Assembly: GCF_000315625.1 (NCBI RefSeq)
Contig: NW_005434644.1
Location: 512,998-576,997, forward strand
From: Guillardia theta CCMP2712
Taxonomy: Eukaryota > Protista > Cryptophyta
DNA: 64,000 bases
Direction of reading: 5' to 3'
The stretch's first letter is position 1. Each line of letters starts with the position of its first letter. Below the pieces are notes generated by a model, which was given only the letters and a program-made list of their open reading frames with translations, was not told the origin of the DNA and did no database searches. Shown piece by piece: positions 2,770 to 36,426 of the stretch. The translations under genes were made by a program, and so were the position numbers.

Positions 2770-3610
2770 TTGAGTACTGAACAGGTTCGGCCCGTCACGG
2801 TTGAACGCCATGACCCCCGGTCGGGCCCGCCCCGCCGGGATCATTCGGACCCGGCGTCACTGTGCGGCGGCCCGGGGACTCGCGCGGGTCACTCAGACCG
2901 TCCCGGCGTACGCCCGGCGGTCCGCCGGCCCGGCCCGGCGGGCCAGGGGGGGGGCGTCCGATCAGTCCGACACCGTGGACAACAGGCCGCACGGCGGGGC
3001 CGTACCGTACCGTACCGTGCTCCCGGGCTCCCGGAGTCCGGCGCCCGGGACTCCGGTAACGAGTCCCGGACGGTCCGGTCCACGCGGGCGGCCAGCCTGT
3101 GCCACTGAGTTCATGATAAACCGTGAACGGCACTGCGGCAGCGCGCGAGCCGCGCGGCCGGCCCTCTCGAGTCACTGAGCCCGAACTTCGGAACATACTA
3201 TCGGAAGAAACTTAACGCGGTTTGACCTCAGAACGGTCAGCTGACTTGAATGACTTAGTGCTAACAGTGAGTCACCGTCAGCCGACCGTATCAGTGAATG
3301 GCCGCCGCGTGACTCGGTTGAGGGCGCCGCCGCCGGCGGCCGGCGGGGCACTTGAAATGCCAGTAAATTTGACTAAGACGCCGGTGGTGCCAGGCCGCGG
3401 CTGGGCCCGGCCCGGGCCGGCGGTCACGGCCGGGGGACTGTCCGCAGCCCTAGCTGGGCGGCCGCCGCCGCTCAGCCGGCCGGACCCGCCGGCTTCAAAA
3501 TGGAGTCCCGGCCGGGCCCGGGCCGCCGCCGCCCGGCCCGGCGTGACCGTATCGGACGCCATCCGGGGGCCTCACGGTGCCGCCCGCGCGGGCCCGGCCG
3601 GGGCGTGACT
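2770..3610. promoter_or_regulatory. CpG/GC-rich intergenic island between divergent genes
   Basis: Very GC-rich, built of CCGG/GGCC and GTCAC/GTGAC words; only low-complexity Arg/Pro/Gly ORFs. Confidence 0.55.
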
Positions 3611-3719
3611 TTTTTCTTTCAGTCCCTTGCTTGGGAGATGTCACGGTCGGGGCAGGGCAAGAGGGAGGGAGACGGGAGGAGGGGGGACTGCCAGTGACCG
3701 CACTGCGCTCAGTCTCAGG

Positions 3720-6688
3720 ATGTCCAAGTCTGAGAGGAGGAGGACGTACGAGGTCGTGGTCCAGGAGCGGGGATGCGACCTCCCGGGCGGCATGCCGGCG
3801 GGTCCATGGGAGAGCTTTGAAGATGCCAAGGAGCAGATCAGGTGGTGGGCGTCCCACCAGGACGTGGAAGGAGAGCCCTCCAAGGGCTTCACGGTCTGTG
3901 CGTCAGGAGGCGACCCGTCCAACCGAAGGCACGGGCGGCGCAACAGCCTCCTGTGCACGGCTACTCGCCTCAAGGGACCGGCACGGTGCAACTGGGGTCT
4001 GTTACTTGAAGAGTCCACAGCAGGGTGGATTGTTCGCAAGGCGCACAAGGGGTGCGACCTGCTCAAGCACAGCCACGTCGGGATCCCTGACGTGTCACAC
4101 CTGCGCGCGCGCCTCCAAGGAGCAGGAGCGCAGCAGCTCGTCGGGGAGCAGGCGGATGGCGAGCTCCCGATCCGGCGCTCCCTGGATGCCATCAGGGCGG
4201 AAAGGAAGTGCATCGTACCTGACAGCTTCCCCGCAGGGCCTTGGGAAACTTTCATAGATGCCAAGTATCACATCGGGCAATGGGCCAAGGGCTTCGAGTG
4301 GGGGGAGGGAAAGGTCGGGTTTGCTGTGGTGGGGTGCGGGAAGGAGGAGGGAAACTCCGTGCGAGGGCCGCGACATTCCTTGTGCTGCACGTGGTACAGG
4401 AAGAAGAACAACATGCCGTGGAAGCGATGCCCTTGGAGGATCGACATAGAGCTGTCGTCCGAGGGTTGGACTCTCCGCGACTCGGTTGGCCTGCAGGATC
4501 TGTCCTACCACTTCCACGATGAAGAGGCCATGAGCGCTTGGAGGTCAAAGCAGCTGGCTGAAGAGCAGCAGGGCAAGGAAGAGTTGGTCTGCTTGAGGAG
4601 CGAGGAGGAGATCAGGCGGCTCAGGAAGTGTGTGCTGCCGCAGGGGATGCCGCAGGGGCCCTGGGACTCGTTTGAGCAGGCAAAGGCGAGCATCAACCGC
4701 TGGACGTGCGACGAGAGCACTGGCGGAGGAGGGTGGGCGGTGATCAGCAGCAGCTGGACTAAATCGTCGTCCAAGAAGGGACAGAGGCAGTACCTGTCCT
4801 GCTTCCGGTCGGGGAGGCCGCAGGAGACCAGCTTCCAAGACAGCATCGCCCTTTGCTGCGCTTGTCCCTGGAAGGTCGAGCTGGAGGAGGCGAAGGAAGG
4901 ATGGGTTGTGCGAGATGCTCCCATAGGAACTGACCTGAGTTTTCACAACCATGACCTGATACAGGTGCTCGGCCGACACTCCTGTGCCCCTCTTCCTCCT
5001 CTTCTTCGTCCTGCTCCTCCGCCTCGACCTTACTCTACTTGCTAGCCTCTTCCACGCCCTCCTCCCTCCTCCCTCCTCTCTCTTCTTCAGGGGAGCTGAT
5101 GTATCCCTGCAGTCTGGTTCGTCCATCTCTTCTCCAGCTCCTGAAAATTTCCCCTCGTCCGTGGTGGAATTGATGAACAGGAAGGCTCTTGTCAAGCAGC
5201 AGAGGCTCACGGCAAAGACTCAAGTGATCCTCCTCCTCCTCCTCCTCCTCCTCCTCCTCCTCCTCCTCCTCCTCCTCCTCCTCCTCCTCCTCCTCCTCCT
5301 CCTCCTCCTCCGCTCTCCATCCCCCCCACCCCTTCTGCTACAGAAGTCCTCACCTACCCTTCTACCCTCCTGCCCTTCTGCCCTCCTGTTCCTTCCTTTG
5401 GTCCTTCCTTTCCTCTTCAAGGGGGACTGAACTGGTCGAACAGACGATGGAGGCGAGGTCGTATCTCCGCAAGCGATCTCGTTGCGTGTCCAGAGCTCAC
5501 GCTCGCGACCATGTCTACGTGGCAGTGAGAGCTGAAGGAGAGGGAGAAAGAGGAGGTTCAGTCTTGCTGCTCCTGCTCCTTCATCTTCAGTCTTTCGTCC
5601 TCTGCTTCTGCTGTTCATCCTCATTTATCGCAGGCGGTGGCGGTGATTTCGAAATCCTTGGAGTCTTTGACAACGTCAAGGCAGCCAACCACAAGGTAAT
5701 CACTGTCGAGGAGGGAGGAGGGGGGCATAAGTGTGGAGCGTTAGAGATTCAAGGGAAGGAGAGGAGAAGAAACGAGAGGAGTAAACCAGAACATTTCAGG
5801 CAGAACTTTCCTTCGCCGAGGTGTGCGGGAGGAAGACCGGATGGAGGAAAGAAAGTCAGCTGGAGCAGGGATGCTTCCGGGGGATCGCGAACCTGAGAGA
5901 AAAGAGGTCAGGAGCGTCGAGCTCGCGGCGGCAGTGACGTCCAGGCGCAGGCTGAGTGTGTGGGTGGAGAGAAAGAAGCTACGGTCAGAGGCCTTTGCGG
6001 GTAGGGGACGAGAGGAGGAGTTGGAAGTGGAAGGGACTGAAGAGCAGTCCAGGAGACCGTCGACAGGCAGAAGGGGCGAACTTTGTGTCGACCTTCGAGG
6101 GACAAGACTCGGAGGAGAACAGAGAGGAGGAAGATCGACAAGATGAGGATGAAGCCATGGAGACTGTGAGGATGCTCCCTCCTTCCTTCCCTTACCACCT
6201 CCCCTTCCTCCCCTCCTTTCCTTTACTCAACTCGTCCCTTCCCTCCCCTCCTTCCCTCCCTCCCTCCCTCCTTGACTTCCTTGCAGGAGATGGAGAGAAA
6301 GGCCCTAAACTTTCTCTGTTCGGCTCCCTCCGCCCTCCCTTCCTCGTCCTCCTCATCTCAGAAGCAGCCTCCTCACACGCGCGTCAAGTGGCTCAACGGC
6401 GGAGGCGATGCGGGAGCAGAGGGGTCGCGGTATGCCGAGCACGCTGATCTCCTTGCCGACCCGCTCCTCTCCTTCCCCGCACTGGTCTCCGAGCGATCCT
6501 CCTTCCTCTTCAAGTCGAGCGAGGACTCGAGGGCGGCGAGCAAGAAGTTGGGAGGGTCGAGCAGCAGGGGTGTGCTGGAGACTAGCCTGCAGGAGGAGGA
6601 GCTCGCAGGCATGGCAAGCGACCGGCCGAGCCCCTTGCTGTGTCCGTTGAGCTGGGAGGCCAACGCGTCTATGCTGAACAATAGCTGA
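3720..6688 (+). CDS. Protein with three tandem FAR1/WRKY-GCM1-like zinc-binding domains and a spliced low-complexity C-terminus
   Basis: Three repeats of 'C.lP.gmP.GPWesF..AK..I..W...G(F/W).V...R..L.C...C.W...LE....GW..R.....DL..H.H' in the first exon (about 3720-4964); later exons inferred near 5091-5223 and 6287-6688. Confidence 0.7.
5228..5311 (+). repeat. (CCT)n microsatellite in an intron
   Basis: Perfect CCT run just after the probable donor caa|gtgatc. Confidence 0.9.
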
Positions 6689-6887
6689 GACAAGCCCGGG
6701 GGGAGGGGATGATGAGGAATGAACGCGGTTAAAGCGACCAGACCCGGGATGGTGACCAAATCGGAATGCGAGTGACAGGTAGAGCAGAGAAGCCGCAGAA
6801 GAGGAGGAAAGGGGGGAAGGGATGGGGATGGCAATGATTGTAGGTGAGGAGGAGGCAACACGGTGTGATCGACCTCATCGGATGGCG

Positions 6888-9299
6888 TTAGCTTGTACTT
6901 TTGCTGGTGTTGTAGAGGTTGAAGAGCCACATGCTCACGAGCACGAACAGCGTTACCCACACGTTGCGGTCCATCATGAAGACGCCGCGCTCGAAGGACA
7001 GGAAGCGATCACGCGCCATGTCGTGCTGCGACCAGGAGCGGGTCAGGGAAGTGTCTGCCACTCCCTCCTCCCATCCCTCCATGCTGATCGTCACGCTCTT
7101 CTTCCTCTCCTCCGCCATCCGCAGACTCCTCGCCCCCGCCGCCCCGAAGCAGTTGATGCGTCTGCACGACACTTGTCAGAGAAGTTCTGCCCTCCCGATC
7201 CTCCGCCTCCGCCTCTCTCACGGCTGCTCTCCCGTTTCCTTTCCTATCTCCTCACTTGTGCCATCCTTCCCCGTCATCTCCACACGCTGCCTCCCTCGCC
7301 CCTCGCCCCTCTCCCCTCCTCCTCCCTCGCCTCTTCCTACATGTCAAGAGAAGAGAGGGCGGGACAACAGGGCAAGCTCTCCGCCAGCGCCATCGCTCCG
7401 AAGTCGCCGATCCCATTCTCGCGCAGGTCAACCCGGACGATCTGGCGCAGCTTTGGCAGAACTTCTGCGAGAGCGAGAGCTCCTTGGTTCCCGATCCGGT
7501 TGCTGCCCGATGGGTCAAGACACTCAGAAGGAGGAGGGGAGAGGAAGGGGGACGGGAGGGTAATGGGCAACGGGAAGAAGAAGAGGAAGAGGAAGGAGAG
7601 GAGAAGGAGACAAGAAGGGGAGCGGACGGGAAGGGAAAGGGAAAGGGGAGGGGAAGGGAAGGGGGAGGGAAAGGGAAAGGGGAGGGCAAGGGAAAGGGGA
7701 GGGCAAGGGAAGGGGGAGGGGAAGGGGGACGAAGAGAAGGGGATTGGGGCGAGCAGGCACCAGCTGAGGTCGATGATAGCCAGCGAGCGCAAGGAGGACA
7801 GCATGGGAGAGAAGCCAATCAGCCCAGCGTCTTCCACAAGGTTGTGCCGCAGCCTGCAGGAAGGAGGGAGAGATCAACATCTCTCGGGAGGACAAGGTCC
7901 ACAGCCCCTCACCCGAGATGCCTGACGCTGGAGCTCGACGATGTGCGAGCAAGACCGGCCACGAGGTTCACTGCCAGAGCAAGCTTCACCCTGTCTCTTC
8001 CTCCTGAGACCCGCCCTCCCATCCTCTCGTACACCCTTCCTCTCCTCCTCGTCCTCGTCGTCGTCCCTGTCCTCCCCCTCCCCCACTCTGGTTGCCCCAC
8101 CTGATCCATCTGCTCGCAGAATATTATGGCTCATGTCCACCGTTGCCAACTTCACACAGCTGCCATAATAACTCAGCTGCCTGCACATCCCCTCGTCCTC
8201 GTCCTCCTCCTCGTCCTCCTCCTCGTCCTCCTCCTCGTCCTCCTCCTCCTCCTCCTCCTCCTCCTCACCTAGACAGTCGTTCTCCCAGCAGTGCTCCTCC
8301 GCTAGCTCCGATCTTGTTCCATCGAAGATCAACAATCGCGAGCTCGGGACATCCACACAAGCTCGAGGAGAGAGCCTCGGCACCCCTGAACAAGAAAGAT
8401 CAGCAAGAAGCAGGTAGCAGCAAGTTAGCAGGGAAGAGCCGAAGGACTGAAGAGGAAGAAGAGTAGAGGCCGTGAAAAAGAGGTCGAGGGTGGACATGGC
8501 AGACGGAGGAGGAGGAGGAAGAGGAGGGAAAGCCAATACGCCGTGGTGCCTCACCGGTCAGAGATCTTGTTGTTGGCAAGGAAGAGGTGCTGCAAGGAGG
8601 ATCGGACTTGTCTGCCCAAGGACGTGGCACCGCGATCGCCGAACCCGTTCATCCCAAGGGCAAGATGCACGAGCCTCTCGCACCTGCCAGCAGGCCGTCA
8701 GGCTCCCGGCGCGTCAAGTCAGATGAGGGGACCAGGTAAGTCCTGAGGACAAGCCCTCCACACCCTGATCTCCGAGGCCGTTCTTGCTGAGGTCCAGGAA
8801 CTCGAGGAGGTTGCAGTGCTTGAAAGACGACGAGAGCCTCGAGGCTCCTTCCACACCTGCGGGTGCGCAGGGCATGAGGACTCAAAATGCAGGGAGTAAA
8901 GGCGAGCGGGAAGAGAGAGGGGAGGGAAGGGGAAAGAAAGGAGCGAGGGGGAGCGGCAGAGGTGCGGGTGGCACAGTCAGAAAGGGAATGAAGAGAACAG
9001 GGAGGCGAGAGGGCGTCAAGAAGGAGCAAATAGGAGAGGAGACGGGGGGGTGATTGAAAAAAATGGAGGTTTGAAGAGATATGCACAGATTGGAGCAACT
9101 GGGAGACCCTTATGTTTGCTCCAATCTTCTGCTTGAGAAACCGATCATGTCTCACCGATCTTGTTGTCTCTGAGGTCCAAATGTTGTAGCTTCTTGCACA
9201 ATACAATGCATTCCGCCAAGATGGCGGCACCCTTTCGAGTTGATCAGAATGAGTTGGAGACTGAGAAAAGAACGGAAAAGGAGGAGGAGGAGGAAAAAG

Positions 9300-12516: not shown

Positions 12517-15500
12517 ATGCAAGAGATGGAAACTATCATCTCCCCTGAGGACGTCCTGCGACCACATGCCTACGTCGAAGTGACTTCCTCGACGCGAGAG
12601 GAACAGCTCGAAGATGGCGTGCCCATTGACATCGAGCCGAGTGGTCTTGGGGAATCAAGCATCATCGAGGTCAACCACGCGTCTTTCCTAGATGCGTTTG
12701 TGCGCAACTACACCCAGCAGCCCGGTAACTTCATGGACCTTGCCTTGAAGGACAGGCACGTCTACCGTCACGATCCTCTCCTGTCTGTCTTCTCATGGGA
12801 GCCTATCACCGCCTTCATGTCCTCGAGAGCCGGTCAGCTCATCGCTCTGCTCGTGGCCGTGCCTTGGCTGGTGGTGAGGATATACGAGGTCGCAGCTCTC
12901 CGGCAGCAAGACTTCTTCTTCCCAGCCATCAGCTCGGTGCATGTCATCCTAGAGCCGCACGCCATACCCAGCAACGTGTCGTGCGGCTGGGATGCGCGTC
13001 TGGAGCTGCTGAGCTGGTTCTTCCCTCCGCTTGCTCTGCTGATGGCGGGGATCGGAGCAGCCTTGAACAGAGTGCGGTGGGTGAACAAGGTGAGTCAGGC
13101 GGGAGGTCGGGGTGGAGCATGGAGCTGACATGAGGCTTGGGGGGGGCTGCAGATCTTTGTTTTCTTCGGAGCGCTCGACGCGGCCTGCAACATGCTGATA
13201 TTCCTTCGGCTGGAGGTACGGGGCGATTACCACAAGACGATGCTTGGGACACCTTCGTTTCTGTTTCTGCTCGTCGCGGTCAAGGTACGGGAGGGCGGGG
13301 AGCGACGAGCTCCAGGCGGCGGAGGGGGACTGACGGGGGTGCTGTGCAGGACGTGCTTCTGTTCCCCGGGCCGCTCCTGTACAGCGAGTCGTCGGCGATC
13401 GAGCTGGGGCTGCTCTCGAACGTGGTGTACGCGTGTGCAGCAGGGGCGTGGTTGGTGTCGTATCAGAGCATCATCGTGATCATCGTGCTGAGCATGGTCT
13501 TGATGCTGCGACGGGCGCTGGTGTACCGGGGGGAGCGGATGATCGCGGGGGATCGGGCGGCGTTTTGTAGGGAGTGGGAAGGGCTGGCAGACAGGAGCAA
13601 GGAGGCGATCCAGCACCTGTCGGAGCAAGTCAGGGAGTATGCAGCATCTAGGCCCGAGTCTCCTTTAAGTGCAGACGAGACGGCAGGAGACGCTGAGGCG
13701 AGGTCGAGCCTGAGGCAGCTGCACACGCTCTACGGGAGAGGTCGAAGCCTCACAGAGACGGTACAAAAGGGGACGTTTGTGGTAGAGCAGCGATCGGCCG
13801 CGGGGCCGGTCAACAGCCTGGACCAGCTGTACGCGCACGCGGTGCTGATAGAGCCCATCTTCAGGGAGAAGGCGCTGGGGCTTGCGGCGGAGGCCAAGGG
13901 GATGATCCCGCTACGGCTGAGCGCGGATGACAAGAGAGAGTACGTGCGGCTGGAGGACATCCGGGGGGACGTGAGCTTGATGAGACACGTGGAATGGCCT
14001 AGAATCAAGAACGTCGACCGCGCCATCGACAAGATCCTCCGCCTGTGCGATGGGCAGACGTCGAGGCTGCTGGACGTGGTGCGGCAGTGCATCGTCTTCG
14101 AGCAGCTCGAGGACCTGTGCGAGTGTCTGGAGCGGATCCTGGGAGACCCCGAGATCGTGGTGATGAGGATCAAGAACAGGCTGGACCCGAGCTTCGACGC
14201 GCGGACGACGGGGGGGTACAGGGACGTACTTTTGAACCTACGGGTGGTGACGGAGAGGACGAGGGAGCTGGGGGTAGCGGGGCACGTGTGCGAGCTGCGG
14301 CTGGGGGTGATGGGGATGCATGTGCTATCGACACGGGAGCGGCGGCTGCGGTACCGAGGGGTGAAGCAGGTACTGAGGTACGAGAGGGCATGGTGGGCAA
14401 AGCGTGGTACTTGGTCAATGTCGGAGCTGGTAGAGAAAACGAAAATTTCGTCAATCCAAGTCAGCATGAGCCAAGTGTCTGCGTCGTTTGTTTGGAGTCA
14501 AGAAGAGACAATACAGTCTCGATGGATGATGCAGATGTATGAAGCTTTCGATGGATGCACACAGAGCTCTTTCATGAAGTACAAGGGCAAGTACCCGGGG
14601 GGTATCATGGACGAGAAGCTACGAAACATCGTCACCGGGATACAGAATACCATGACCTCGAGCGTCATCTTCTCCTCTAGACCTGTCACCAATGGCCTGC
14701 AAATGTTGACGACGCAGGTCGTGCTTCTTGCCGTCGCAGCGTTCCTGACGTACATGTACTCCCAATCTTCTGATCTCAGCGGATTCCTGCAAAACAAAGC
14801 TACTTCCGTCTATGTCGCAAGATTGCACATACAAGAATACCGCGATCAAGCTCCTCGCGCCTCCATTCCCAGCGCCTCCGTCTCCAACTTCTCTCTCATG
14901 CTTGACAGCTGCAACCAGCGATCTCCGGCGTCCACCAAGACGGTGAACAACACGCTCTACTTCTTCTTCGCTCCGCCGGCGGAGGCCAACGGCTGGCACT
15001 TCAGCCTCAACCCTGACAACCAGCTGGCGGGCTACGACCCGATCGCCTTCAACCTCTCGATACTGGAGCGGCCGGTGGGGAGCGGGGAGGAAGTAGAGAG
15101 TGTGTCGGGGAAGGCGTGGAAGGACTGGACGAGCTTCTCGTGCAGAGAGAGGCCGGGGATGGGAGTGTGCAAGGAGGGCGAGGCGTACAGGGGGGCTCGG
15201 ATGAGTTTCAGCGTTCAGTTTCTACTACCGAAGATAATTGCAACGATCTTCTCCTTTGTTCAGCCTCTTGTATGCGTCTTGGCGGTAGTGACGGCAAGGC
15301 TAGGGTATCGACGGGTACCGAAGACGATGTTCGCGTCCATGTTTCACGTCATTGGTGTGCTCGAAATGTGCTTTTTCGTTGCTAGGGATGACACCACTGG
15401 AACTGCGTTGCTTTGGGGCATTGGGGACTTTTCTTTCGGGATGGTGATCGAGTTTCGAGAGCAGTACACAATGGCTATGCTGCCCTTCTACTGCATCTTC

Positions 15501-16496
15501 ACCTCCATTGGTGGCACCGCGTTCTATACTCAAGGCTTTAGAACGGCTCCTACCGTAAATTACTTCGGGTACAGTAACTACTTGCTACTTGCAGGATGGT
15601 TGTACTTCACCGTAGGTAGAGGATTGCTCGTCCGAAAGGCCTTCAACAACGTCAAGTCGGAGCTTCTCAAGTACAACGACCTCTGGCAGTCTCTCTCTTC
15701 CTCTCAAAACAGCCGCCTGACCCTGGAGCGCATCGGCCAGCTGGTCTCGCAGGTCCAAGTCCCGACCACGCTGGTTCAGAGCCGCGTGCATGACCCCGAC
15801 AGCCCGCTAGAGTCGTCGTCGAGCCCGCTGGAGTGGATGCTGAGGAGGAGCCAGGGCGGGTCCTCCTCGCTGCGTGTGCCGAGCAAGAGCGTGTGGCCGC
15901 TGAGCAAGGACCCGCGGGTGGTGTCGCTAGACCAGCTGTACGCGCAGGCGGTGTTTGCCGACCCGATCTTCCGGAAGAAGGTACAGGAGCTGGCGGAGGA
16001 GTCGAGGGGCTTGTTCCCGGCTCTGCCTTCAGGTAGCGAAGAGTCGGTGGAGTGTATCGGGTGGAGGGAGGCGAAGGAGGACGAGGAGCTTCAGCAGCGG
16101 ATCCGATGGGCGCCGATGAAGAGCGTGGATCGGGCGGTGGAGAAGCTCGTGCGATCCTACAACAACGACGTGTCGAGGCTGCTGGACGTGGTGCGGCAGT
16201 GCATCGTCTTCGAGCAGCTCGAGGACCTGTGCGAGTGTCTGGAGCGGATCCTGGGAGACCCCGAGATCGTGGTGATGAGGATCAAGAACAGGCTGGACCC
16301 GAGCTTCGACGCGCGGACGACGGGGGGGTACAGGGACGTACTTTTGAACCTACGGGTGGTGACGGAGAGGACGAGGGAGCTGGGGGTAGCGGGGCACGTG
16401 TGCGAGCTGCAGCTTCTGGTGAAGGGGTTTATGGATCTGAGGACGACGGAGGGGCACAAGAGGTATGTAGCGTATAGGAACCTGAGATGTGAGTAA
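12517..16496 (+). CDS. Polytopic membrane protein (~1283 aa) with two RelA/SpoT-like nucleotidyltransferase domains
   Basis: Exons 12517-13089, 13153-13284 and 13350-16496 join in frame via GT-AG introns with CTGAC. Two domains carry K.vDRAi.K, LLDVVR, RIKNRL, GGYRDV and GHVCEL(R/Q)L; each follows about six hydrophobic segments. Confidence 0.8.
14060..14298 (+). repeat. 239-bp intragenic direct repeat, copy 1
   Basis: Identical by eye alignment to 16172-16410 (offset 2112, in frame). Confidence 0.92.
16172..16410 (+). repeat. 239-bp intragenic direct repeat, copy 2
   Basis: Identical to 14060-14298. Confidence 0.92.
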
Positions 16497-17310: not shown

Positions 17311-18051
17311 ATCGGACGGACAACAATAAAATTTCAATAAAATTCAGCTTTTGTCTCAACAAAGAAATGCAGGAAAAGGTAGAATTTCAATAAATTTATG
17401 TAACGCTGCGAGGGCACGTGCAAGTATCATAAGCCATAGTGGGGGAGATGGCGGGAGGGGAAGAGACAGAAGAGTTGAGGATGCCGGGGGGGAGAGAAGG
17501 ACATGGTGGAGAGTGGAACAGAGGAAGCTCAAAAGTCGGGGAGAGAAGCTGTAGAATGCAGGGAGAGATGACAGGCAAAGAGTGTGGATCGATTACAGTC
17601 GTAGGAGATATGCTGGTTGAGGATACGATAGAACAATGTAGTGGGAGTAGGAGAGACAAGATGGATGTATGCACGGCCCCGTTGAAGCAGCTTCATGGTT
17701 AGTCATGGCTGCAGTGGAGGAGAGGCTTGTTTGAGTCTGCTAGAGGGTTGAAATACACAGCATCAGAGCAGGTCAAGATGACCTGACGTTGGGCGGTTTC
17801 GACTGCAACTCTTGCCTGAGTGGAGGACGGGAAGATTTGTCTCTCACCTCTGTGACGCAGCCACCGCCTTGGACGACATTGAAGCCTTGAGCTCTTCCAT
17901 CACAGCAAGGAGGCACATTGCAGGCAAACAGTCAAAGATTTGTGGATTACTGAAGTCAGGTTGCTCTAGCGGTTCTCGTCTCCTCCTCCTTCTCCTCCTC
18001 CTCACCTTCTCTGCTCACTCCCTGGGCTTCAGTCCTTCCGACTCTCGCAGG

Positions 18052-20289
18052 ATGTCGTCAGCCATGGATGTCGCATCTGCTCTCGCTCTCGCCGACGTGC
18101 GGGCAGGAGGTGGGCAGCAGCTCATCCCAGGCACGCAGGCTACCGTCCTGTGCTGCATGTGCGGAGTTCCGATGGTTTGGAACCCGTCAAGCATGTGCCC
18201 CAACTGCATCCGAACGCGGGTAGACATCACCGAAGGAATCCCCAAGAGCGTCCCCCTCCAGCGGTGCCGAGCATGCGGCAGGTACCTCAACCCCCCCAAG
18301 GCATGGACCGTGTGCGAGCCGGAGAGCAAGGAGCTCCTGCAGATCTGCCTGAAGAGGGTGAAGGGGCTGAACAAGGTGAAGCTGATCGACGCTTCCTTCA
18401 TCTGGACGGAAGCGCACTCGAAGCGTCTCAAGCTCAAGCTGACGGTGCAGAAGGAGGTCTACAGCGGGGTGATCCTGCAGCAAGTCTTCGTGGTCGAGGT
18501 CGTGATCCACAACTTCCAGTGCACCAACTGCCACATGGTGGCAGCACAGAACACCTGGAGAGCAGCAGTGCAGGTGAGACAGAAGGTGGACCACAAGAGG
18601 ACCTTCTACCTGCTGGAGCAGCTCATCCTCAAGTACAAGGCCCACCAGCAGACGGTGTCGGTGAAGGAGGTGCCGGACGGCATCGACTTCTACTTCCTCC
18701 ACCGCCACCATGCGCTGAAGTTCCAAGACTTTGTCAACACCGTCGTGCCTTGCAGGATGAAGAGCGCGAGCGAGAAGCTGATCTCCGAGGACTTCAACAA
18801 CAACAAGATCAACGCCAAGTACACCTTCTCCGTCGAGATCCTGCCCGTGTGCAAGGACGACATAATCTGCCTGCACCCCAAGCAGCACGACACATTAGGG
18901 AACGTGGGACCGCTCGTGCTCTGCATCGGAGTCACCCAGTCAGTCAAGTTGTTGGACCCCCTGACAATGAAGAGGGCGGAGCTGAGACCGGTAGCCCTCT
19001 CTCCCCGGCTTGCCCCCTCCCTTGTCTCACTGTCGAGCAGGAGATCTTCTACCGCCATCCTCGCGGTGTCCTCATGTCAACAAAGCAAGCAACAGAGTAC
19101 ACCATCATCGACGTCGAGCCCACCGGCCTCGTCAACGGCAAGATGCGGCAGGTGAGAAGCAGTCGGCAGGCATGAGGGGAAAGAGCAGGAGCAGGAGCAA
19201 GTGGGCAGGGGAGTAGAAGAGGATCAGGAGGAGGAGAGGAGGAGAGGAGGAGAGGAGGAGAGGAGGAGAGGAGGAAGTCGCTCATTGAATGGAGCAGGCA
19301 GAGCTCACTCTCGCTCGAACTCGAGATCTTGGAAGCAACGATCAGATCTTTCACTCCCTGACGCATCTTGGGAATGTTCTGCAAGCGGGCGACACCGTGC
19401 TGGGGTACGACCTGACTGCCGCTGTCTTCAACGAGGCCGAGACCAAGGAGTGGCCAAAGCTGCAGCTGCCTGACGTGAGCGTGCTAACTGCTGCAGAGGA
19501 GGGGGAGGCTGACCTGAGTGCTGGTCAGGTGGTGGTGATCAAGAAACTCTACCCCGAGGCGAGGAGGCGCCGACGCCTCTGGAAGCTGCGATCGATCATC
19601 AAGGAGGAGGAGGAAGGGACTTACAAGTCGCTCCACAAGATGGCGGAGCAGGTGGAGCAGGATAGACCTCGGGGGGGGTGAGGGTCTGACGCTTGACTGG
19701 CAGGACTATGAGGAATTCCTGCAGGATGTGGAGACAGATGCCGAGGTCAGGCAGCGCGTCAACGTCTACAAAGATCCTTCCAAGTTCCGCATCACCGACG
19801 ACGGCAAAATCGAGATGCCAACGTGAGTGACTCCTCCTCCTCCTCTACCTCCTCTTCCAGCCCCCACCCCCCACCCGTCCCCCTCTCCCTCCTCCCCTTC
19901 CTTGTCCTTGTTCTCGTCCTTGTCCCCGTCTTCGTAGCTCGCATCATCGCCCTCCTCTTTGCCGCGTCCTTCTCCTCCTCCTCCTCCTCATCCTCATCCT
20001 CCTCCTCCTCCAGACAAACTTCTCACTTGCTTCTCCTCCTCGACCTCTGATCACGTTCGTCTGCATGCTCCTTACTTTGTATGGCAGGAACACCAACGAG
20101 GAGGAGACTGAGGTGCAGGAGGAGGACATGGTTGACCTCGAGGAGATGTTGGACGACTTGGTGCTCGGGGAGGATGAAGAGGAAGCCGTTGGGCAGGAGC
20201 TCAACGACGAGTTTGAGGAGGAGCCAGCCGGGGCTGGGCCTGTCAAGAAGGGGAGGGAAGGAGGAGGAGCTCGCAATGCTCCGTACTAG
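18052..20289 (+). CDS. NMD3: 60S ribosomal export adaptor NMD3 (multi-exon)
   Basis: CCMCG..MCPNCIR..VDITEGIPK; CEPESKELLQICLKRVKGLNKVKLIDASFIWTEAHSKRLK; VQVRQKVDHKRTFYLLEQLILK; HLGNVLQAGDTVLGYDL; C-terminal VDLEEMLDDL NES-like segment. Confidence 0.95.
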
Positions 20290-20457: not shown

Positions 20458-23400
20458 TTAGAGCTCTGAGAGCAGCGGCGTGAAGTTGGTCGGCGTCACT
20501 TCCTGCAGCTTCTCCGTGTGTCTCCCTCGCTTGGCGGCGTTGACGGTCTCGGGCGTTGGAAGACCAGCTGCAGCAGATGGAGAGCCCTCCTGCTCCTGCT
20601 CCTGCTCCTGCTCTTCCCGTCCCCGCACCCTCCCACGAGCCCCCTCATGCTTGTCGCTCCCTCGCGTCTCCTCTGCCATGTGCCTGGACGCCTCCGACCA
20701 TTGAGTACGAGAATCGCTGCGGATCAGCATCGCCTCCTCTACGGAATTTCCCCATCGCGACTCGGCGTCCTCGAGCCCTGAGTAGTTGAGGACAACTCCA
20801 GCTGCCTCCCTCTGCTGGCTTCTCACCTCCCTCTGGTGTTCGGTCAGCACGAGCTTTCTCTTGGCATGAGCTATCTGCACGAACTCTTGCCGGGGGTCGT
20901 CGGAGCCTCCGGCCTTGGCTTCACTGACTGGGGTCGATCGCTTCTTCTCTGCTGAGCTTCTCACGGGCGTTGTATTTCTGCTCCCCTGCTGGGCCAGGAG
21001 GCTTCCTTTTGCTGTCACGGGCCTTGCGGGGGAGAAGCTCAAGCTCTGAGTCAACGTCGCTTCAGCTGTCACCGGGCTCAGGTTCCTCTCGTCCGATCCC
21101 GTGTCTACGTTGACATCTTCTGCGTCAAGCGGCTGGTTGCCAGGAAACGAGACTTTGACACGCTTAGACAGTTTGACAAGGAGCTTCATGAGCGCGTCAT
21201 CGATCTTGAGCAGACTTGTTGACTTGCCGAAGGTTCCGTTCCACGTGTCAAGCGCCTTGTTCTTCAACTGCACGTTGCTCCCTTCCATGGAAACGACGAA
21301 CATGTCAGAAGTTCTCGCCAGCAGCTCGTCAGTCGACGAGCCCCATGGGAAGCAGCGAGCCAGAGCTTGCATCAGCTTACCCCAGACCAGCTCGACCTCA
21401 TCTGCAATTCCAGCAGAGCCATGATGGTGAAGTTGATGGAGTTTGCTGCCAGTTTCATGTCGGTTACAACTTCTCAGACACTGCAGCATCGCCGGCTTGG
21501 CTTGAGTGAGAAAGTTGACGAAATTTTCTGTGCTGCTCATCTGGTCGAGCAAAGGCATGAAGCAGCGCAAACAGGTCTTGAAGAGATTCAGGTTCATCCG
21601 ATCGCTTCCAACAAGGCTAAACCACAACTCGACAACTTTGGTGCATACGGCTGAGATGGGAGCTAGCATGCCTTCAATCCCTGCAGGCCTCGAGCCTTGC
21701 AGCTTGTTAGCATGTTGAACAACCTCGAAACTGTCAGATTCCGTGAAATTCTGAATGATGAAAGACAAGAACTCCATGGGCAGACTTGCATCCGAGATAT
21801 CCATCGCTCTCAAAACCTCTTGTGCAATCTTCTCCGCAGCCGCAAGCTTTGTTCCATGACGTATAATGCTGACGCGCTTCATGTTCACGAACAGGTCCAA
21901 CCACCTTGACTTGAGCAGTTCAAAGGGAGATTTCTCATCAATTCTCACGTCATCGACATCCTTGCTCGACAACAAAGTGAGCATTTGTCCGAGTATGAAT
22001 GCACAGGTTGGAAGCTGCAACTTTGTCTTGGCAGGAGATGCCAACGCACGGACAGAAAAATCGTGTAGGTATCCAAGGTAGGAATCCGTAGCCTTGATCC
22101 AACACAGGACTAAATTCCTCTCCAGCCTTGTTTTCACGTCCCGTGGATGGCTGGACTCAAAGTTCCAGTGCCGCAGCGTCCCGATGGTTTCGAACAGGTT
22201 CCGTAACGACTTAACTTCGGTGGACAGGTGCTGGCACAACTTTTCTAAAGTGAGTCCAACTTGAGACTCGACCTCTGGCGATGAGAACATCGCTAAGATT
22301 ACACTGAGGTATGCCGCCACATTCATTTGTACTGGCTGGAACTTTTCCTTGTCAAGAACGTCACAGATGACCGATGACAAATCGAGCTGCACCATCATAG
22401 TCTTCATCGCATGAACACTTACGCTCTGTCGTGAACAACAATCCAGAACCCGATGCACAGTCAGAAAGGAGGACGATGGAGTAAAATCCTTCTCTTCAAA
22501 AGATTTGACAAGCTTTTTCAACAAAGTGGAACAGAGCTGCTGCATCGCTGTTTTCGCTGATTCCCAGCTTTGGAGCTCGAATTGACCAGATATTGTGTTA
22601 AACAATTTTGCCCATCCTTGTCCAGCTAGTTCTTTGACCTCTTCATTTTGGTCCAAGGTGACAAGGAATAAGAAATCTGAAAAAGCATCGATATTCTTTG
22701 CAAACAAGCTGAATTCCAAAGAGGCTGCACTAGCTACGGAGGTGCCGTTGTTGTCAACACTTTGATCTGATTGCATTTCCATAAGACCCTTCAAAGTTTT
22801 CAAGGCTTCTCCACGAATTCTGCTATCTTTATCCTTGAGGGCTATGGCACACACCGAGGTAAAGGCGACTTCAAAAGTATTGTTTCGTCCCATCCCGTTG
22901 TTCTTGGTGAGCATTTGCACTATTTGTGTCCAGACTCCCATGGCAGACCGGCGGACACGGCTGCTCAAGTCATGTGCAAGAGTGCTTCTGATTGGAGCAA
23001 TTATGAGCTCCAGTCGCTTCGGATGCGCCAACGTTGAATTCATGTCAGAGAAAAGTTTGGCGAGGAACAACCAACTCTTGTAAGCCTCCTGACGTATATC
23101 TGGTGACTGGCATGAGAATGCCATTTGGATGAAATTCACTGCAAGACGAATAAGCACCAAGTCACGTACATGTCAGGGCTCACAATAGTCGTTGATCTTT
23201 CCGCTCTTGACCAGCTTACCACCGAGAAAGCCACAGAGCCAGCCCCATCCTCTGATGTATGATTTGATGGCAGAATCTGGTTTCTCCTTCTGGAGCTCAG
23301 ATTCCACAGCCTTGAGCCTTTGCAGCATCCCCTCAGGCTCCTTCCCGAGGTCCTCGACAGCCTGATCGTTGAGGCGCAATCTCGCAGTGCTGTCCAAGGC

Positions 23401-25072: not shown

Positions 25073-28000
25073 ATGACCGACAATTCCACATGGAAGGTTG
25101 GGAGGAGGGTCAGAGTTATGTACGATGATGGGAAGTGGTATCCCGCTGGTGATCTCGTTATCGATGTCTTATTGATTCTTCATTCACATGTTCGCAGTTA
25201 TCAAAGCGTTGGACCCGAGTGCAGAGGAGCCGTACACACTAGAATTCGAAACAGGGGACGAAATCCAAACAAAGCTTCCCGACCCAGATATCAAAGCGCT
25301 GCCACTTGGCGCATGCTCCGTTTGTGACAAGGAGGATTGTTACGAAGGAGATCTCACTGTTTGCTGCAACGCATGTAGATTATCCCTCTCCCTTCACCTT
25401 ACATGCTTGTCTGACTCCTAGTGCAGGCAAGCTCGTCGTACACCAGGGTTGCTTTGGCATACGACCGTATCCTGGAGACGACCCTTGGTATTGTGATTTA
25501 TGCGGTATGATGCATCCTTGTCTTGCATACATTCTTGACGTTGCTTGCAATGTACAGCCGATGCTCCCGATGCGAATCCACCCAAGGCTGATTGTACGAT
25601 GTGTGTCCTGTGCGGGAAGAAGGTACTTCCTTGGCGCACAATTACAATACTAAAAGGAGCTATGTGGCAGGGCGGAGCTTTGAAACCAACCTTTGATGGC
25701 AAATTTTTTGCACATCTGTCTTGCGTGATATGGATACCAGAAGCTCACGTAGTGAATACTTCCACAATGAGTCCTGTCGAAATCAGACATATCCCCAAGG
25801 AGAGGCTGAAGCTCAAATGCCAAATTTGTAAACAGAAAGATGCTCCTTTTGACGCTCCTGTGCAATGTTACGAAAGCTCATGCTCTCGTAATTTTCACGT
25901 GGGTTGTGCACGAGCAAGTGGTGAAGGATACTACATCGCAATTTCTGAAAATGCGGAACCACAGGCCTTCTGCCCTCGACATGTACCCGAAGATTTCAAA
26001 AAGCTGCAACCCAAGCGAAAGAGGAACAGATCTTCAAGCTCAAGGATAAGGTCAGGGACATCAAATCAGGACTCAGCATCAAAGAAAGTTACTATAGAAC
26101 TGAACCCCGAGATTATGGAATTTGAGCGGAAGTTGAAGGAAGTCGAGGACGATAGGAAGAAGGAACAGAAAAAGCTTGATCTCATCTTGGAGCAAAGGAA
26201 CAGAAAATGGGCAGAACAGCGCTCACAGGAACAACAAAGGCTCCTTCTTGCAAGTTCTTACAAATATCTAGCCACACAGAAACCTCTGCTCGGTGCTGCG
26301 AACCCATATCCCGTAGGTGGCATTAGCGGTGCGCTCCCTCCAACTCAACAGAATCTTACTGGAATGGTTGCAACGGGCTCGATGTACCCTAACAATCCCG
26401 GTAATTTGATTTGCCTTTGATTTGCCGTGCTGAGCTGACATGTATTCGGTTGTGTAGGTACGCTGCCACTCTCGACCCCAGCGGCTGCACCTTCTGCGCT
26501 GGGTGTTACTCCACCGCAAGATGTTAATAATCCTTCTTATGTCAGTTCAAGTCTGCCGGTAGGCGGTCTACCAACAGCAACAGCCAACCCCTTAATGCCC
26601 AACGTTCCGAGTTCAGGAGCCATGGCAAGTTGGTACCCACCTGCTCTCGTTCCAAACACTACGATTACTTCTGGAATGCCGCTCAATAACAATATGAGCT
26701 TTGCAACACTCCTTGGTGCATCAACTCAAATGCAGAATGAGGAAGAGAGATTAAAAAGGCAACAAGAGCTAAAAGAATTGAAAGACCAGGAGACAAGAGT
26801 GAAAGAGCTACGAGAGGATGAGAAGAGGCTCAAAATCGAGCTGCAAGAAGCCAAAAAGCGGGCTCGAGAGGCCAAAAAAGAGGCAGAAGAGCGAGAAAAA
26901 CGGGAGAGGATGGAAGCAAAGCAAAGAAAGCAAGAAGAAAAGGAGCAGAATGCCAGAGATTCTCGTTCGAGATCTAGAGAAAGCCGATCGTCTGGTGTCT
27001 CGTCAGCTAGACGGCAGTCAGATGAGAATCTTGCTAATGGTTCCTCGACATCACGGTCACCAATGCCTGCTTTTGAGGAGCGTCCAATGCCTCAGAAGCC
27101 GCCCTCTGCATTCGCGATATTCAGAGACAAGATCAAGGACGATGTGAAGCAAGAACTACAGGCGCGAGGCGAAGATGTAAACTTCAGTACCGAGATGTCG
27201 AACAGGTGGAATGCCCTGTCCAAAGAGGAGAAAGAAAGCCTGTATGCAGAGGCATCCCGCCTGATGGCAGAGTATCAACAAGAATTGGAGCAGCGCCTTG
27301 AAGAAGACAGGCAGAGGAGAGAGCAGATGAACAACTTTCAATCGATCGGATACAAAAGAAGCAGAGTGCAAACAGACTTTTTTAATTCCGGTGGAGAATT
27401 GATACGATCTGATACCGATCCAACTAAGCGTAGTCGCAAACCTACGGTGCAGAAGAGGAGACTCACTCGATCTTGGAAAGCAATCGTCCTTGAAGCAGTC
27501 ATCCAGCTTGCCCCTGACTTCAGCACTGCATGTTCAATCTCTCAAATCATCAAACAAGCCTCGAAGAATTACCCCGCATTTGAAAGCCGTGCCGAATATA
27601 AAGTGAAGCAAACGTTGGACGAACTGGTTCGCGATGAGTACATCAACCGGTTCTGGCCAAATGCTGTGATTGAACTTGACGAGGACGACGTGGAATTTTG
27701 CCTACCAGATGGTGAAAGTGTTGTAGTTGCAAAACTTGCACCCGACTGTGATGAAATCAAGATGGAAGAGGAAAGCGATTTCTCTTTTTCAGACAGGTTC
27801 GATGACTCGAAATCTGAAAGATCGACTAAAGAAGAGGAGATCTTGTACTATGCACCTGACGGAGCGATAGATCTGCTGCCCGAGGGTGAAATTGCTCCTG
27901 TCAAAGCAAAGGAGGGACATTCTGAACACGAGAATCGTGCTGCACACAATGCTGCAATGAGAGCGCAGAGTTCCATATGTGATGGTCACAAAGCGAAGTT

Positions 28001-31000
28001 TGTTCTTTCACACTGGGAAAAGTTCGCTCCTTTCGTCCCAGAGCATTTGCGGTCTGTGGAAGGTCCTCTGGGCAAAAAGCTGGAGGCTGCAGTGAAGAAA
28101 TTGCCGATAGACAAGCCAGGCAAGGGTAGGAGGCAGGTTCACAGGCAGCCTGACTGCATCGAAGGCGGAGAAATGCATCCTTACCAACTCGATGGACTCA
28201 AATGGCTTGTCAATCAACACGATACGGGCGCAGGTGGTATTCTTGGAGATGAGATGGGGCTCGGAAAGACGTTGCAAGTAATATCCTTGCTTGGATTCCT
28301 GAAGACTGTGCGGGGAGAAGATGGGCCTCATATCGTCATTGCCCCCTTGTCTGTCATGAATAATTGGGTGACAGAAATCAAGCGATGGTGCCCCCAACTT
28401 CGAGCTGTTCCTTTCCATGGCCCACAGTCAGAGCGAGAAAGAATCAAGAGGGAGAAGCTCATCTACGGCAAATTCGACGTGATGTGCACAACATACGAGA
28501 TGCTGGTTGCGGATACGTACACCTGCCAGAGGTTTCACTGGGGATACATCGTCCTCGATGAAGCTCATCGAATCAAGAATGAAAAGACCCAAATGGGTCA
28601 AGCAGTGCGGAGGTTACGTTCCTCTCACAGACTACTGATCACTGGAACTCCTTTGCAAAATAACATGCACGAACTGTGGTCCCTCCTCAACTTCTTGTAC
28701 CCAGAAGTGCTATCGAATGCGGATACTTTTGACAAGGAATGGAAATCGAATTCCAAACCGGAGGAGGTTGAAGACAAAGAAACCGAAGACTCGAGTGAAG
28801 TAGAAACATCAACGAAGGAGAATGATGCTCAGAATTCTTCTCCGCTCAATGAAAAGTTGTTGTCAGCAGCACACGCGCTGTTGGGGCCGCTCATGTTACG
28901 GCGGCTCAAAAGCGATGTCTTGTCATCTATGCAGATCCCACCAAAGACTGAAATCAAAATTCTAGTTCCTCTCACAGAAATGCAACGATTCTGGTACTCC
29001 AAGATGCTTACTGGAGAATGCGCAAGTCTTGCAGGCAGTGGGCAAACGGACGCGTACAAGCGATTGAACTCACTAGTCATGCAGGTTTTCTTCACTATCT
29101 TGTATTGTAGAATTTTTGACGTCTGTTGTTTGCAGCTCAGAAAGGTGTGTAACCATCCCTACCTGTTTGAAGAGGCGGACGTGAACAGCGGATGGACCGA
29201 CGAGGCTATCGTGCAGGCTTCTGGGAAAATGATAGTGCTGGACAAACTTTTAACGAAGTTGCAGAAAGAGGGAAGAAAGGTTTTAGTCTTCTCTCAATTC
29301 ACCTCAATGCTGGATGTGTTGGGAGATTTCATGCACTTTCGAAGATACAAATTTCTTCGACTGGACGGATCGACCTCCGTGGCCCGTAGGCGATACGAGA
29401 TAGCTTGCTTCCAAAACCCGAAGTCTGACTACTTTGTCTACCTCATCTCAACGAGGGCAGGAGGCCTGGGGATCAACTTAACTGCAGCTGACACAGTCGT
29501 ACTCTACGACTCCGACTGGAACCCATCCATTGACTCTCAGGCTCAAGATCGTGCTCATCGCTTCGGGCAGAAGAAACCCGTCTCGGTCTATAGGTTGATC
29601 TCAAGACACACCGTTGAGCAGAGAATCCTACAGGTCGCAGAGAACAAAAGTTGTATGAACGCGATGGTCATGCAGGATGGCGGGCCTGAAATGGAGGGAG
29701 TGTCGGGCCCAAAAGGAATGTCCATGGCAGAGATCGTCAAGATGATTGAGTATGGGATGCGCTGCATCGTATCTGGCGACAATTCGAAGGACGTGGACGA
29801 GTTGAGAGCAGCATCCTTCGATGAGATCGTTGATCGAGCCAAGGCTGACCTAGAGAAAGAGCGCGCAGAATTTGAGGTAATTGAATGCTGCCGTTAGGAG
29901 GGTCGTGGATTAACTCGTTCGTTTGATCAGGCGGACAAGAAGCAGGCAGAGGACAGCGCGCAAGATGGTTCTAACGAGGACGACAAGGGAGACGAAGGCT
30001 CATCTGCCCTTGAAGGGTTGATCAAGGGGATCTCGACTGATGTCAACCAGGCAACTTTCAAGACAGCCAAAGAGCTTCAGAAGTCGATCGCTCAAGAATG
30101 GTCGTCATTTGCTGGCACCAAACGTCAAGTGCAGGCCCGAACTGTGAAAGTTGATGGCCATGATGTACTGAAGTGGAGTGTGGACGAGGAGAGGAACGCA
30201 CAAGCAGCGCAGAAAAAGGCCGTGGAGGATGCCGCAGCAAAGCACGAATCGAAGATGGAGAAGAAGTTCAAGCATCAGCCTTTCTGCATCTTGTGCCATT
30301 GCGCGGATGTATCCGATCTCAACACAGGTGATGCTGTCGAGCATCATCTTCAACGGCCGGAGCTCAATTGTGTGCGATGTCCGACCAGCATGCACGTCGA
30401 CTGCACTCCTGGGTGGAGTGTCGTGCAGATAAGGAATGACGGGACTCGGAGGCAGGCAGTAGGAGGATGGGTGTGCCCTCACCATCGGTGTAAAGTTTGC
30501 TGGCGAACTGCTCACGAGTCGGGCGGTCTTCTCTTTCGCTGCGTTGCCTGCCCGACCTCGTTGTGCGAGGAGTGTCTTCCGGAGGGATTTGAGCCTGTTG
30601 CCTCCCAGCAGTTCTTCGGGAAGTTGAACTACGCGATGCCTCGATCCTTCGAGACCATCCGCTGTGACCGATGCGCCGTCATCGAAGAGCAGAAGGCCAA
30701 CGTGAGGAAAGACGTGAACAACTTCCTGAAGAAGTTCCCAAGGTGGAAGAAAAGTGCAGACCCGATGGGCTACAGCGCTATGAACGTTCACTTCAGCGAG
30801 AGATTTCCTGCAAGCATGCGGCTCAAGTTGCCCGGCAAGGGGAAGTCAAAGGGAAAGAACAAGGCGCAAGTTGCAGATACGAGCAGCACAGAGATGGAGC
30901 CGAAACCGGTTGAAGTTCTTGCGGATGGTGAGTGGTGGAAGGCGTTGATCGTGAAGAAGGAAGGGGACAAGGTGCTGGTCAAATATGATGGGGGGGTAGA

Positions 31001-35785: not shown

Positions 35786-36426
35786 CCTGCAACAGCAAAT
35801 GTCATCCAGTTGGAGAGGCGAAAGAGATGCTGCGCCTCGTTGGTTTGCTTCTGCTCCCTCTTGCCGCTTTATCCTTTTACATGTCACGTAAAGGTCTCCA
35901 TCCAAACCAGAGCTACTAAGCCCAACCAACCGCTTCTTCTTCCCTGCTCCTAGCTTCGTCTCCCATCCTCGCTTTCTCCGATGACCCTCTATGCCCCTAA
36001 TGTCCAGCCAGGATGGTTCTAATCGGCATGGAGTGTTCTTGTCCTTGCTACAACCTCGCTGTTTTCTTTCCGCATCCTCTCCTGTTCCCTTCGCTTCCTG
36101 TTGTCTCCTGGACCTTGAAGTACCCCACCTTACTATCCCCGTCAGCATAGTATTTTAGTACCGGTGCCTATATAGCAATCTTTGGCGTCCAGGTGTAGAG
36201 CTGGTGTCGAGGGAGGGAGGGAGAGGAGGCAGGAGGGAGAGGGGGGAGGGAGGGAGAGGGGGGAGGGAGGGAGAGGGGGGAGGGAGGGAGGGAGGGAGGT
36301 CAACAAGATTGAGCAATGGAGACTCGGATGAAGTTTGATTCAAGGCTTGCAATGTACATAGTCAAAATCCCACTAAGAAAATTGAAGTTTCGAGTATGAA
36401 GAGTACTATTCGCACAGTTCATGGTA

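Follow-up and report, generated by a model that had tools for sequence, protein, structure and literature searches.

What might a cryptophyte alga do with a protein that carries two bacterial-type alarmone synthetase domains on a body of twelve membrane segments? This question is raised by one gene, GUITHDRAFT_107722, in a 64,000-nucleotide (nt) stretch of the Guillardia theta CCMP2712 genome (contig NW_005434644.1, positions 512,998 to 576,997; hereafter the window). A sequence-only reading had proposed an enzyme laid out like the membrane adenylyl cyclases of animals, built convergently from RelA/SpoT-like domains and making a nucleotide messenger. Here we establish directly the structure of the gene, its expression and splicing, the fold and conserved catalytic residues of its product, its internal duplication and the size of its family. 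The explanation we favour, with somewhat better than even confidence, is that GUITHDRAFT_107722 is a membrane-anchored, two-headed putative pyrophosphokinase whose product, made on the cytosolic side, would be a purine nucleotide pyrophosphorylated at its 3' position; the body of twelve transmembrane (TM) segments and a large loop would be its regulatory input.

A spliced gene with two RelA/SpoT-like domains

We found that the gene is described by a three-exon model at 12517-16496 (+ strand), encoding 1283 amino acids (aa) with no internal stop:

12517-13089, + strand: exon 1, aa 1-191; acidic N-terminal region, then TM1 and TM2 joined by a short loop that has an NVS sequon
13090-13152, + strand: intron 1, 63 nt, GT..AG; removed in contigs of runs X1 and X4
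13153-13284, + strand: exon 2, aa 192-235; TM3 and the start of TM4
13285-13349, + strand: intron 2, 65 nt, GT..AG; removed in contigs of runs X1, X3 and X4
13350-16496, + strand: exon 3, aa 236-1283 and TAA stop; a single open frame of 3147 nt

The deposited counterpart is a 1283-aa protein annotated "hypothetical protein" (EKX46517.1 / XP_005833497.1 / L1JDX3), to which the exon 3 translation (1048 aa) is 100% identical. For expression we used contigs from the public runs X1, X3 and X4, for which the kind of run is recorded as a guess only. Both introns, and exactly these, are missing from the contigs, which therefore derive from spliced RNA. None of the single contigs spans the whole gene; together they tile without error from domain 1 through the second membrane block to domain 2 (X1 14060-14677; X3 14359-15169 and 15198-15764; X1 15648-16201). 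Contig ends at 14089 and 16201 fall just within an internal repeat, as a short-word assembly would give. Two separate genes, the outcome that would have undone the single-protein proposal, are unlikely because exon 3 is one uninterrupted open frame, and the contigs tile across it. In a further run, X20, 18 of 18 RNA reads have A and not G at window position 16439, a synonymous change in the third position of a Leu codon that may be a strain difference or come from reads of a paralog.

The two soluble domains of the protein are the following:

13809-14384, + strand: RelA/SpoT homologue (RSH) synthetase-like domain 1, aa 389-580; K455, R459, K463, R466, D477, R480, Y525 and E550; R552 where domain 2 has Gln; C-terminal H..Y degenerate
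15915-16493, + strand: RSH-synthetase-like domain 2, aa 1091-1283; K1159, R1163, K1167, R1170, D1181 (codon 16185-16187), R1184, Y1229, E1254 (codon 16404-16406), Q1256 and GHKRY

An exhaustive phmmer search with domain 2 returned 2453 cluster representatives at E<=1e-3, 217 of them at 1e-30 or better, and many of the matched proteins are 1000-1700 aa long with two matched stretches. We used a family alignment of 44 sequences based on domain 2, and a second alignment started from domain 1. The family profile matches Tas1 (6OX6, E 5.9e-5) and YwaC (6FGK, E 1.4e-3), and the alignment to YwaC covers the whole synthetase domain with K/K, D, GYR, E.Q and H..Y paired. The alignment started from domain 1, used as a profile, finds the same two proteins. 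Furthermore, 15 of the 44 members individually match the RelA_SpoT family PF04607 at E<=1 (best 2.4e-4, below the threshold), no other family recurs among them, and one relative has a precomputed PF04607 match.

An AlphaFold2 model of domain 2 with the 44-sequence alignment reached a predicted local distance difference test score (pLDDT) of 89.2 and a predicted template modelling score of 0.85; from the single sequence the pLDDT was 39 and the model not usable, and the fold was modelled for domain 2 only. With the domain 2 model as Foldseek query, all of the top 50 matches are RSH synthetase structures (RelP, SAS1, CapRel, an exported small alarmone synthetase (SAS), Tas1, FaRel2, Rel, RelA and SpoT). 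VIA-align superposed it on Bacillus subtilis SAS1 with Z 13.2 and a root-mean-square deviation (rmsd) of 2.7 A over 146 residues; the top 28 entries of its ranking are all RSH proteins, followed at Z <= 6.6 by other Pol-beta-type transferases. Collectively, the profiles for both domains and the model for domain 2 support the assignment of both as divergent members of the RelA/SpoT synthetase fold, as the sequence-only reading had supposed. An HD hydrolase domain, which that reading had not seen either, was not detected by Pfam or NCBIfam at E<=1.

Catalytic residues of the two domains

The five motifs originally pointed out are present in both domains and in the stated order, namely RIKNVDRAIDK (domain 1) or PMKSVDRAVEK (domain 2), LLDVVRQ, RIKNRL, GGYRDV, and GHVCELRL or GHVCELQL. 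Across the 44 sequences K91, K99, D113, R116 and E186 of the alignment are invariant, and R95, R102, Y104, K146-N147-R148, G160-Y161-R162, H183, C185, Q188, H203, Y206 and R210 are nearly so. Alignment positions D113 and E186 are D477 and E550 in domain 1 and D1181 and E1254 in domain 2, and pair with the DIAGVR and EIQ of YwaC; we take the former to be the metal-binding catalytic Asp, equivalent to RelSeq D264, and the latter the Glu of E-x-Q, equivalent to RelSeq E323.

Domain 2 reads PMKSVDRAVEKLVR / DVVRQCI / GGYRDVLLN / CELQL / GHKRY, and domain 1 reads RIKNVDRAIDKILR / DVVRQCI / GGYRDVLLN / CELRL followed by a degenerate C-terminal motif; for comparison, the canonical Guillardia RSH on contig C47 reads GRAKHFYSIYQK / DLIAFRI / MYRSLH / EVQIRT / AAHWMYK. 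The latter is one of only two canonical long RSH genes (HD_4 plus RelA_SpoT) found by a PF04607 scan of the genome (C47:131263-132737 and C24:131220-132315), both presumably for plastid enzymes. In the C47 protein, an insertion separates the RxK helix of the synthetase domain from its Asp motif.

The toxin FaRel2 holds its donor ATP with K66, S70, K74 and R77, uses D90 in catalysis and stacks the acceptor on Y128 (PMC11782079). The Lys/Arg ladder of the Guillardia family has the same spacing (K, +4, +8, +11), with Arg and not Ser at +4, and its conserved Asp and Tyr correspond to D90 and Y128. Around this Tyr lie many conserved basic residues (KNR, R162, H183 and HKR). A positive acceptor patch is reported for alarmone-making enzymes and is reported to be reduced in the tRNA-modifying FaRel2 (PMC11782079), and by this comparison the basic residues would point to a phosphorylated nucleotide as acceptor rather than to tRNA.

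We infer from the conserved residues a catalytic activity and a type of product. Each domain most likely would bind Mg-ATP through the Lys/Arg ladder and the Asp/Glu pair. The acceptor would be a purine nucleotide that stacks on the conserved G-loop Tyr and receives the beta,gamma-pyrophosphate on its 3'-OH. The product would be a (p)ppApp- or (p)ppGpp-like nucleotide, made at the membrane.

The membrane body and its duplication

Hydropathy, averaged over an alignment of 22 full-length paralogs, gives six hydrophobic segments per block and so the proposed layout of 6 TM, domain 1, 6 TM, domain 2. The segments of the second block, TM1' to TM6', are at aa 685-708, 862-884, 894-912, 917-936, 942-960 and 973-992. 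Between and around the two domains the protein is arranged as follows:

12805-13514, + strand (spans both introns): TM block A, aa 97-122, 162-182, 190-210, 226-246, 250-268 and 270-290 by family-averaged hydropathy; homologous to block B
13515-13808, + strand: juxtamembrane linker A, aa 291-388; conserved D..Y/F..W..L motif, common to linker B
14385-14696, + strand: segment between domain 1 and block B, aa 581-684; its final part shares homology with the sequence that precedes TM1 in block A
14697-14768, + strand: TM1', aa 685-708, by family-averaged hydropathy
14769-15227, + strand: large loop between TM1' and TM2', aa 709-861; contains Cys residues and NxS/T sequons; predicted extracytoplasmic
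15228-15620, + strand: TM2'-TM6', aa 862-992, by family-averaged hydropathy
15621-15914, + strand: juxtamembrane linker B, aa 993-1090; motif common to linker A

As the number of segments per block is even, the N-terminus, domain 1 and domain 2 are predicted on one side of the membrane, and not on the opposite sides that would have counted against the original proposal. This side is most likely the cytosol and the TM1'-TM2' loop extracytoplasmic, because basic clusters follow TM2' (ARLGYRRVPK), TM6 (RRALVYRGER) and TM6' (GRGLLVRKAFNNVK) and the loop of ~150 aa carries NxS/T sequons and Cys residues. The loop (aa 709-861) is a candidate for the sensor part, and the 12-TM body together with it likely would provide the regulation or the sensing. 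The first 96 residues are acidic and polar with no hydrophobic signal, in keeping with the earlier remark that a plastid-type leader is not obvious.

Next we compared the two halves of the protein. Profile-profile alignment of aa 60-385 with aa 625-1085 gave a probability of 99.9% (E 1.7e-33), extending from the segment before TM1 through TM6 to the conserved juxtamembrane motif. The halves are thus homologous, and the protein arose by internal tandem duplication of a module of six TM segments, linker and catalytic domain. The large TM1-TM2 loop is present also in block A of many paralogs, and has shrunk there to ~40 aa in GUITHDRAFT_107722. Within the duplicated domains we found two nearly identical tracts:

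14060-14315, + strand: gene-conversion tract, copy 1; spans the catalytic core, Asp motif through Glu motif; 256 nt with 98% identity to copy 2
16172-16427, + strand: gene-conversion tract, copy 2, in domain 2; matches copy 1

Gene conversion holds 240 nt across the catalytic core identical in the two domains: windows of 30 nt within the tract are 100% identical, its edges are sharp, and the flanks are 33-73% identical. An assembly artefact was considered for this identity and rejected, as a sharp-edged tract shared by domains 1 and 2 is found also within each of two upstream paralogs and the RNA-derived contigs break at the tract edges. Between paralogs the tract differs by 3-6%, and the near-identity within each gene therefore means that conversion went on after the genes had duplicated. 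Furthermore, in a tree of the first and second domains of 22 proteins, a first domain often groups with the second domain of its own gene.

The two upstream paralogs lie head to head 16-41 kb away on the same contig (C30:484500-499000; L020 and L021), with 92-93% nucleotide identity. One extra in-frame stop in the alignment of L020 may mark a pseudogene or be an alignment artefact. Divergence from these paralogs is a mosaic, with a synonymous divergence (dS) of ~0.02 in TM block A, ~1.0 in TM1' and TM2'-6' and ~0.6 at the N-terminus, a pattern that points to members of the family having recombined or undergone gene conversion with one another. The ratio of non-synonymous to synonymous divergence (dN/dS) is 0-0.3 in the catalytic domains, 0.26-0.29 in TM2'-TM6' (at dS ~1) and 0.2-0.33 in the large loop; accordingly, all three are under purifying selection. 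The family evolves through duplication, through recombination and through gene conversion within genes, and purifying selection acts on it.

A membrane part of this kind could itself be the working part of the protein, a transporter or channel. Its gating or power would then come from the RSH-like domains, which would bind ATP or an alarmone and make little or no product. Full-size ABC transporters, in which transmembrane domains and nucleotide-binding domains alternate as TMD-NBD-TMD-NBD, have the same gross layout, so that the analogy with adenylyl cyclases is not unique. Conserved acidic residues in TM4/TM5 of both blocks (SE...E / EFREQ) and the strong purifying selection on TM2'-6' would also suit such a role. 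Nevertheless we consider it improbable: Asp, Glu, the Lys ladder and the acceptor Tyr, all the residues needed for catalysis, are invariant in 44 sequences, which would not be expected of a mere binding module, and the TM part has no similarity to any transporter family in Pfam, protein-atlas or sequence searches. Nor did an atlas feature search and a sequence search with TM block B find kin of the block outside the family.

Several observations weigh against the pyrophosphokinase explanation. In the protein and in either domain there is no Pfam or NCBIfam match at E<=1 and the PF04607 gathering score is not reached, so that the Pfam check proposed for each domain came out negative. The first Arg of R-x-K is present in domain 1 (RIK) and missing in domain 2 (PMK), as it is in Tas1 (PIK). 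The G-loop keeps G-Y-R, aligned to GYRSLH of YwaC, and has Asp for Ser and Leu for His; the absence of this His in both domains (GYRDVL) had been noted from the start. Domain 1 has Arg for the Gln of E.Q and a degenerate C-terminal H..Y. The topology is a prediction from hydropathy, and in block A the loops that join TM4-TM6 are so short that the block may have five segments instead of six. Pfam, and feature and sequence searches with TM block B, gave no known sensor domain for the membrane part. Finally, no dedicated small alarmone hydrolase was found, as a genome scan with PF13328 matches the two canonical long RSH genes only; an enzyme for the turnover of a messenger is therefore missing.

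The sub-threshold PF04607 score, the lost His and the partly degenerate domain 1 would be accommodated by a family of catalytically dead scaffolds or pseudoenzymes. We give this little credence, since there is little or no variation in the metal-binding Asp and Glu, the phosphate-binding Lys and Arg and the Tyr, gene conversion keeps exactly the catalytic core identical, and dN/dS is low. An active pyrophosphokinase remains our preferred explanation, with its regulation by the membrane part a further conjecture from the layout.

A large cryptophyte family and its known relatives

We scanned the 87.1-Mb assembly in six frames with the 44-sequence profile and counted loci by hand. There are at least 114 domain matches, in ~52 strong loci, ~31 of which carry, within a single long open frame, two matches spaced by ~2.1 kb, and ~21 weaker loci, for a family of roughly 70. 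Named relatives from other genera are all cryptophytes (Hemiselmis, Hanusia, Rhodomonas and Cryptomonas). The same layout with two RSH domains is seen on a Tara Oceans eukaryotic contig (ERZ907938 k127_2473420, 3450-8882; L017), where a prokaryotic gene caller split the gene into several open reading frames and a gene for a protein with a cyclic-nucleotide-binding (cNMP) domain adjoins it. Structural neighbours in the ESM Atlas comprise unannotated eukaryotic clusters, one mostly from diatoms, together with a Pseudomonadota cluster partly matching PF04607, a phage cluster with Peptidase_S78_2 and a TPR-fused cluster.

A half-size subfamily was seen in the three weaker loci examined, with proteins of 820-920 aa that have TM segments and one C-terminal RSH-like domain:

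C4:1071678-1071893, C100:24463-24837 and C8:279969-280331: half-size loci L023-L025; ~18 similar places in the genome scan

Their motifs (IKQPERAIQK, DLVRA, VKNRF, YRN and HICELQ) are more divergent than those of the main family. By Pfam, neither these three nor eight long homologues have accessory domains.

On this basis we put forward, tentatively and as a possibility only, that cryptophytes have a large family of receptor-type alarmone synthetases, proteins of the plasma membrane or endomembranes that would turn an extracytoplasmic or membrane signal into cytosolic (p)ppApp or (p)ppGpp.

The size of the family suggests another use, in conflict or immunity. Diversified membrane sensors would then carry RSH domains like those of the toxic SAS enzymes (CapRel, FaRel2 and Tas1/Apk), and infection or damage would trigger pyrophosphorylation of tRNA 3'-CCA ends or a drain of ATP into (p)ppApp, shutting down the cell rather than signalling. 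The closest sequence match is indeed a toxin, Tas1, with the highest identity listed in structural alignment (22%); CapRel and FaRel2 are among the fold matches; the phage and TPR-fused clusters are among the atlas neighbours; and very large size, clustering and recombination, all seen in the family, are typical of immune receptor families. However, dN/dS gives no sign of excess amino-acid change in the extracytoplasmic loop, PADLOC returned nothing meaningful for the domains and family members, no antitoxin- or immunity-like partner was seen, and the basic residues near the Tyr suit a nucleotide acceptor better. We therefore regard an effector of this kind as unlikely.

None of the 17 places in the genome matching TIR_2 coincides with an RSH-like place. 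One of the TIR proteins, at C150:8117-11938 (L028:1618-5439), is a Roc-COR-TIR protein (a ROCO-type GTPase with a C-terminal TIR_2) that has neither TM segments nor an RSH match, and at least eight similar Roc-COR-TIR open frames of ~1290-1370 aa are likewise unrelated to the RSH family.

The neighbouring open frames in the window are ordinary nuclear genes, and for none of them is a functional tie to the RSH gene apparent:

17812-19155, + strand: NMD3
20458-23160, - strand: Rif1_N-like protein
26595-29897, + strand: HMG-box and SNF2 helicase
30018-31775, + strand: Agenet/PHD-variant protein
34826-36148, - strand: zinc-type alcohol dehydrogenase
60165-61832, + strand: TruD pseudouridine synthase

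Some paralogs bear the automatic UniProt name "RelA/SpoT domain-containing protein", which GUITHDRAFT_107722 does not. Our full-text searches found no literature that deals with the Guillardia family or with membrane-integral or tandem RSH proteins, or that links RSH or ppGpp to Guillardia or to cryptophytes. Descriptions of RSH synthetases concern bacterial enzymes, soluble or exported, and plastid proteins, and we know of no established alarmone synthetase in eukaryotes outside plastids. What is new here is a known catalytic fold in a new architecture, a new host and on a new family scale: an expressed and selectively constrained algal family of ~70 loci, in which two intact-looking RSH domains are anchored to a 12-TM body. 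If active, these proteins would make (p)ppNpp-type nucleotides or a related product in the eukaryotic cytosol under membrane control, a testable candidate for a new second-messenger pathway. Should the receptor-type proposal hold, they would be eukaryotic second-messenger enzymes of a new, transmembrane class, with a function parallel to that of receptor cyclases and a fold derived from bacterial stringent-response enzymes or toxins.

Among known systems, the single-domain synthetases RelQ/SAS1 and RelP/SAS2 (YjbM and YwaC) share the fold (Z 12-13, rmsd 2.4-3.2 A over ~145-150 residues), the motif order K...K, D, GY(R), E.Q, H..Y and the possession of a synthetase domain without HD. They are soluble bacterial homotetramers of ~200 aa, whereas the Guillardia protein has two copies and 12 TM segments and belongs to a eukaryote; its domains also differ in having D-x-x-R for D-x-x-G-x-R, no His of GYxSxH and a Pfam score below threshold. 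According to a recent paper on exported RSH enzymes, the members characterised earlier all act in the bacterial cytoplasm (PMC12691689).

Tas1/Apk1 (6OX6) is the best sequence match, with only ~45 residues aligned at its E of 5.9e-5, and has the same fold (rmsd 2.5 A). It shares P-x-K..ERA..K and D-x-x-R-x-x-I with the Guillardia domains (APIKSRERAMQK / DLARNTII in Tas1, APMKSVDRAVEK / DVVRQCIV in Guillardia), and both P-x-K in place of R-x-K and D-x-x-R in place of D-x-x-G-x-R set the two apart from Rel and SAS enzymes. Tas1 is a soluble (p)ppApp synthetase toxin, type VI secreted by Pseudomonas aeruginosa and checked by an immunity protein, whereas the Guillardia protein has neither an immunity partner nor a delivery domain.

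The plastid RSH1-4 of plants and algae are, like the Guillardia family, eukaryotic members of the superfamily. Canonical RSH proteins are soluble and organelle-targeted, have HD (often with TGS, ACT or EF-hand) and score well against PF04607; the Guillardia family has none of these features. A 2022 plant and algal review makes no mention of membrane or tandem RSH proteins, and the divRel list of Atkinson et al. 2011 (PMC3153485) names SAS proteins of Dictyostelium, Aspergillus, Gibberella and diatoms, all soluble, with no membrane forms and no cryptophytes.

In layout the closest parallel is to the class III transmembrane adenylyl cyclases of animals, which have the same 6TM-C1-6TM-C2 arrangement and, like the Guillardia protein, come from a duplicated module of six TM segments and a catalytic domain; the half-size relatives in Guillardia are one-module forms such as occur among mycobacterial cyclases. 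The catalytic folds are unrelated, and Pfam detects no cyclase homology domain (PF00211) in the 1048-aa exon 3 protein at E<=1. Furthermore, C1 and C2 of the cyclases have diverged and form one active site at their shared interface, while in the Guillardia protein each RSH domain has all its own catalytic residues and gene conversion keeps the two cores identical; a complex prediction for domains 1 and 2 (score 0.01) was not informative either way. Taken together, the comparison with adenylyl cyclases is valid for the layout and for its origin by module duplication, and not for the mechanism. With its own duplication of a TM6-RSH module, independent of the cyclases, the convergent build first proposed for this gene is borne out, and the family offers both a clean case of a convergent TM6-cat-TM6-cat architecture and a clean case of intragenic concerted evolution of a catalytic core.

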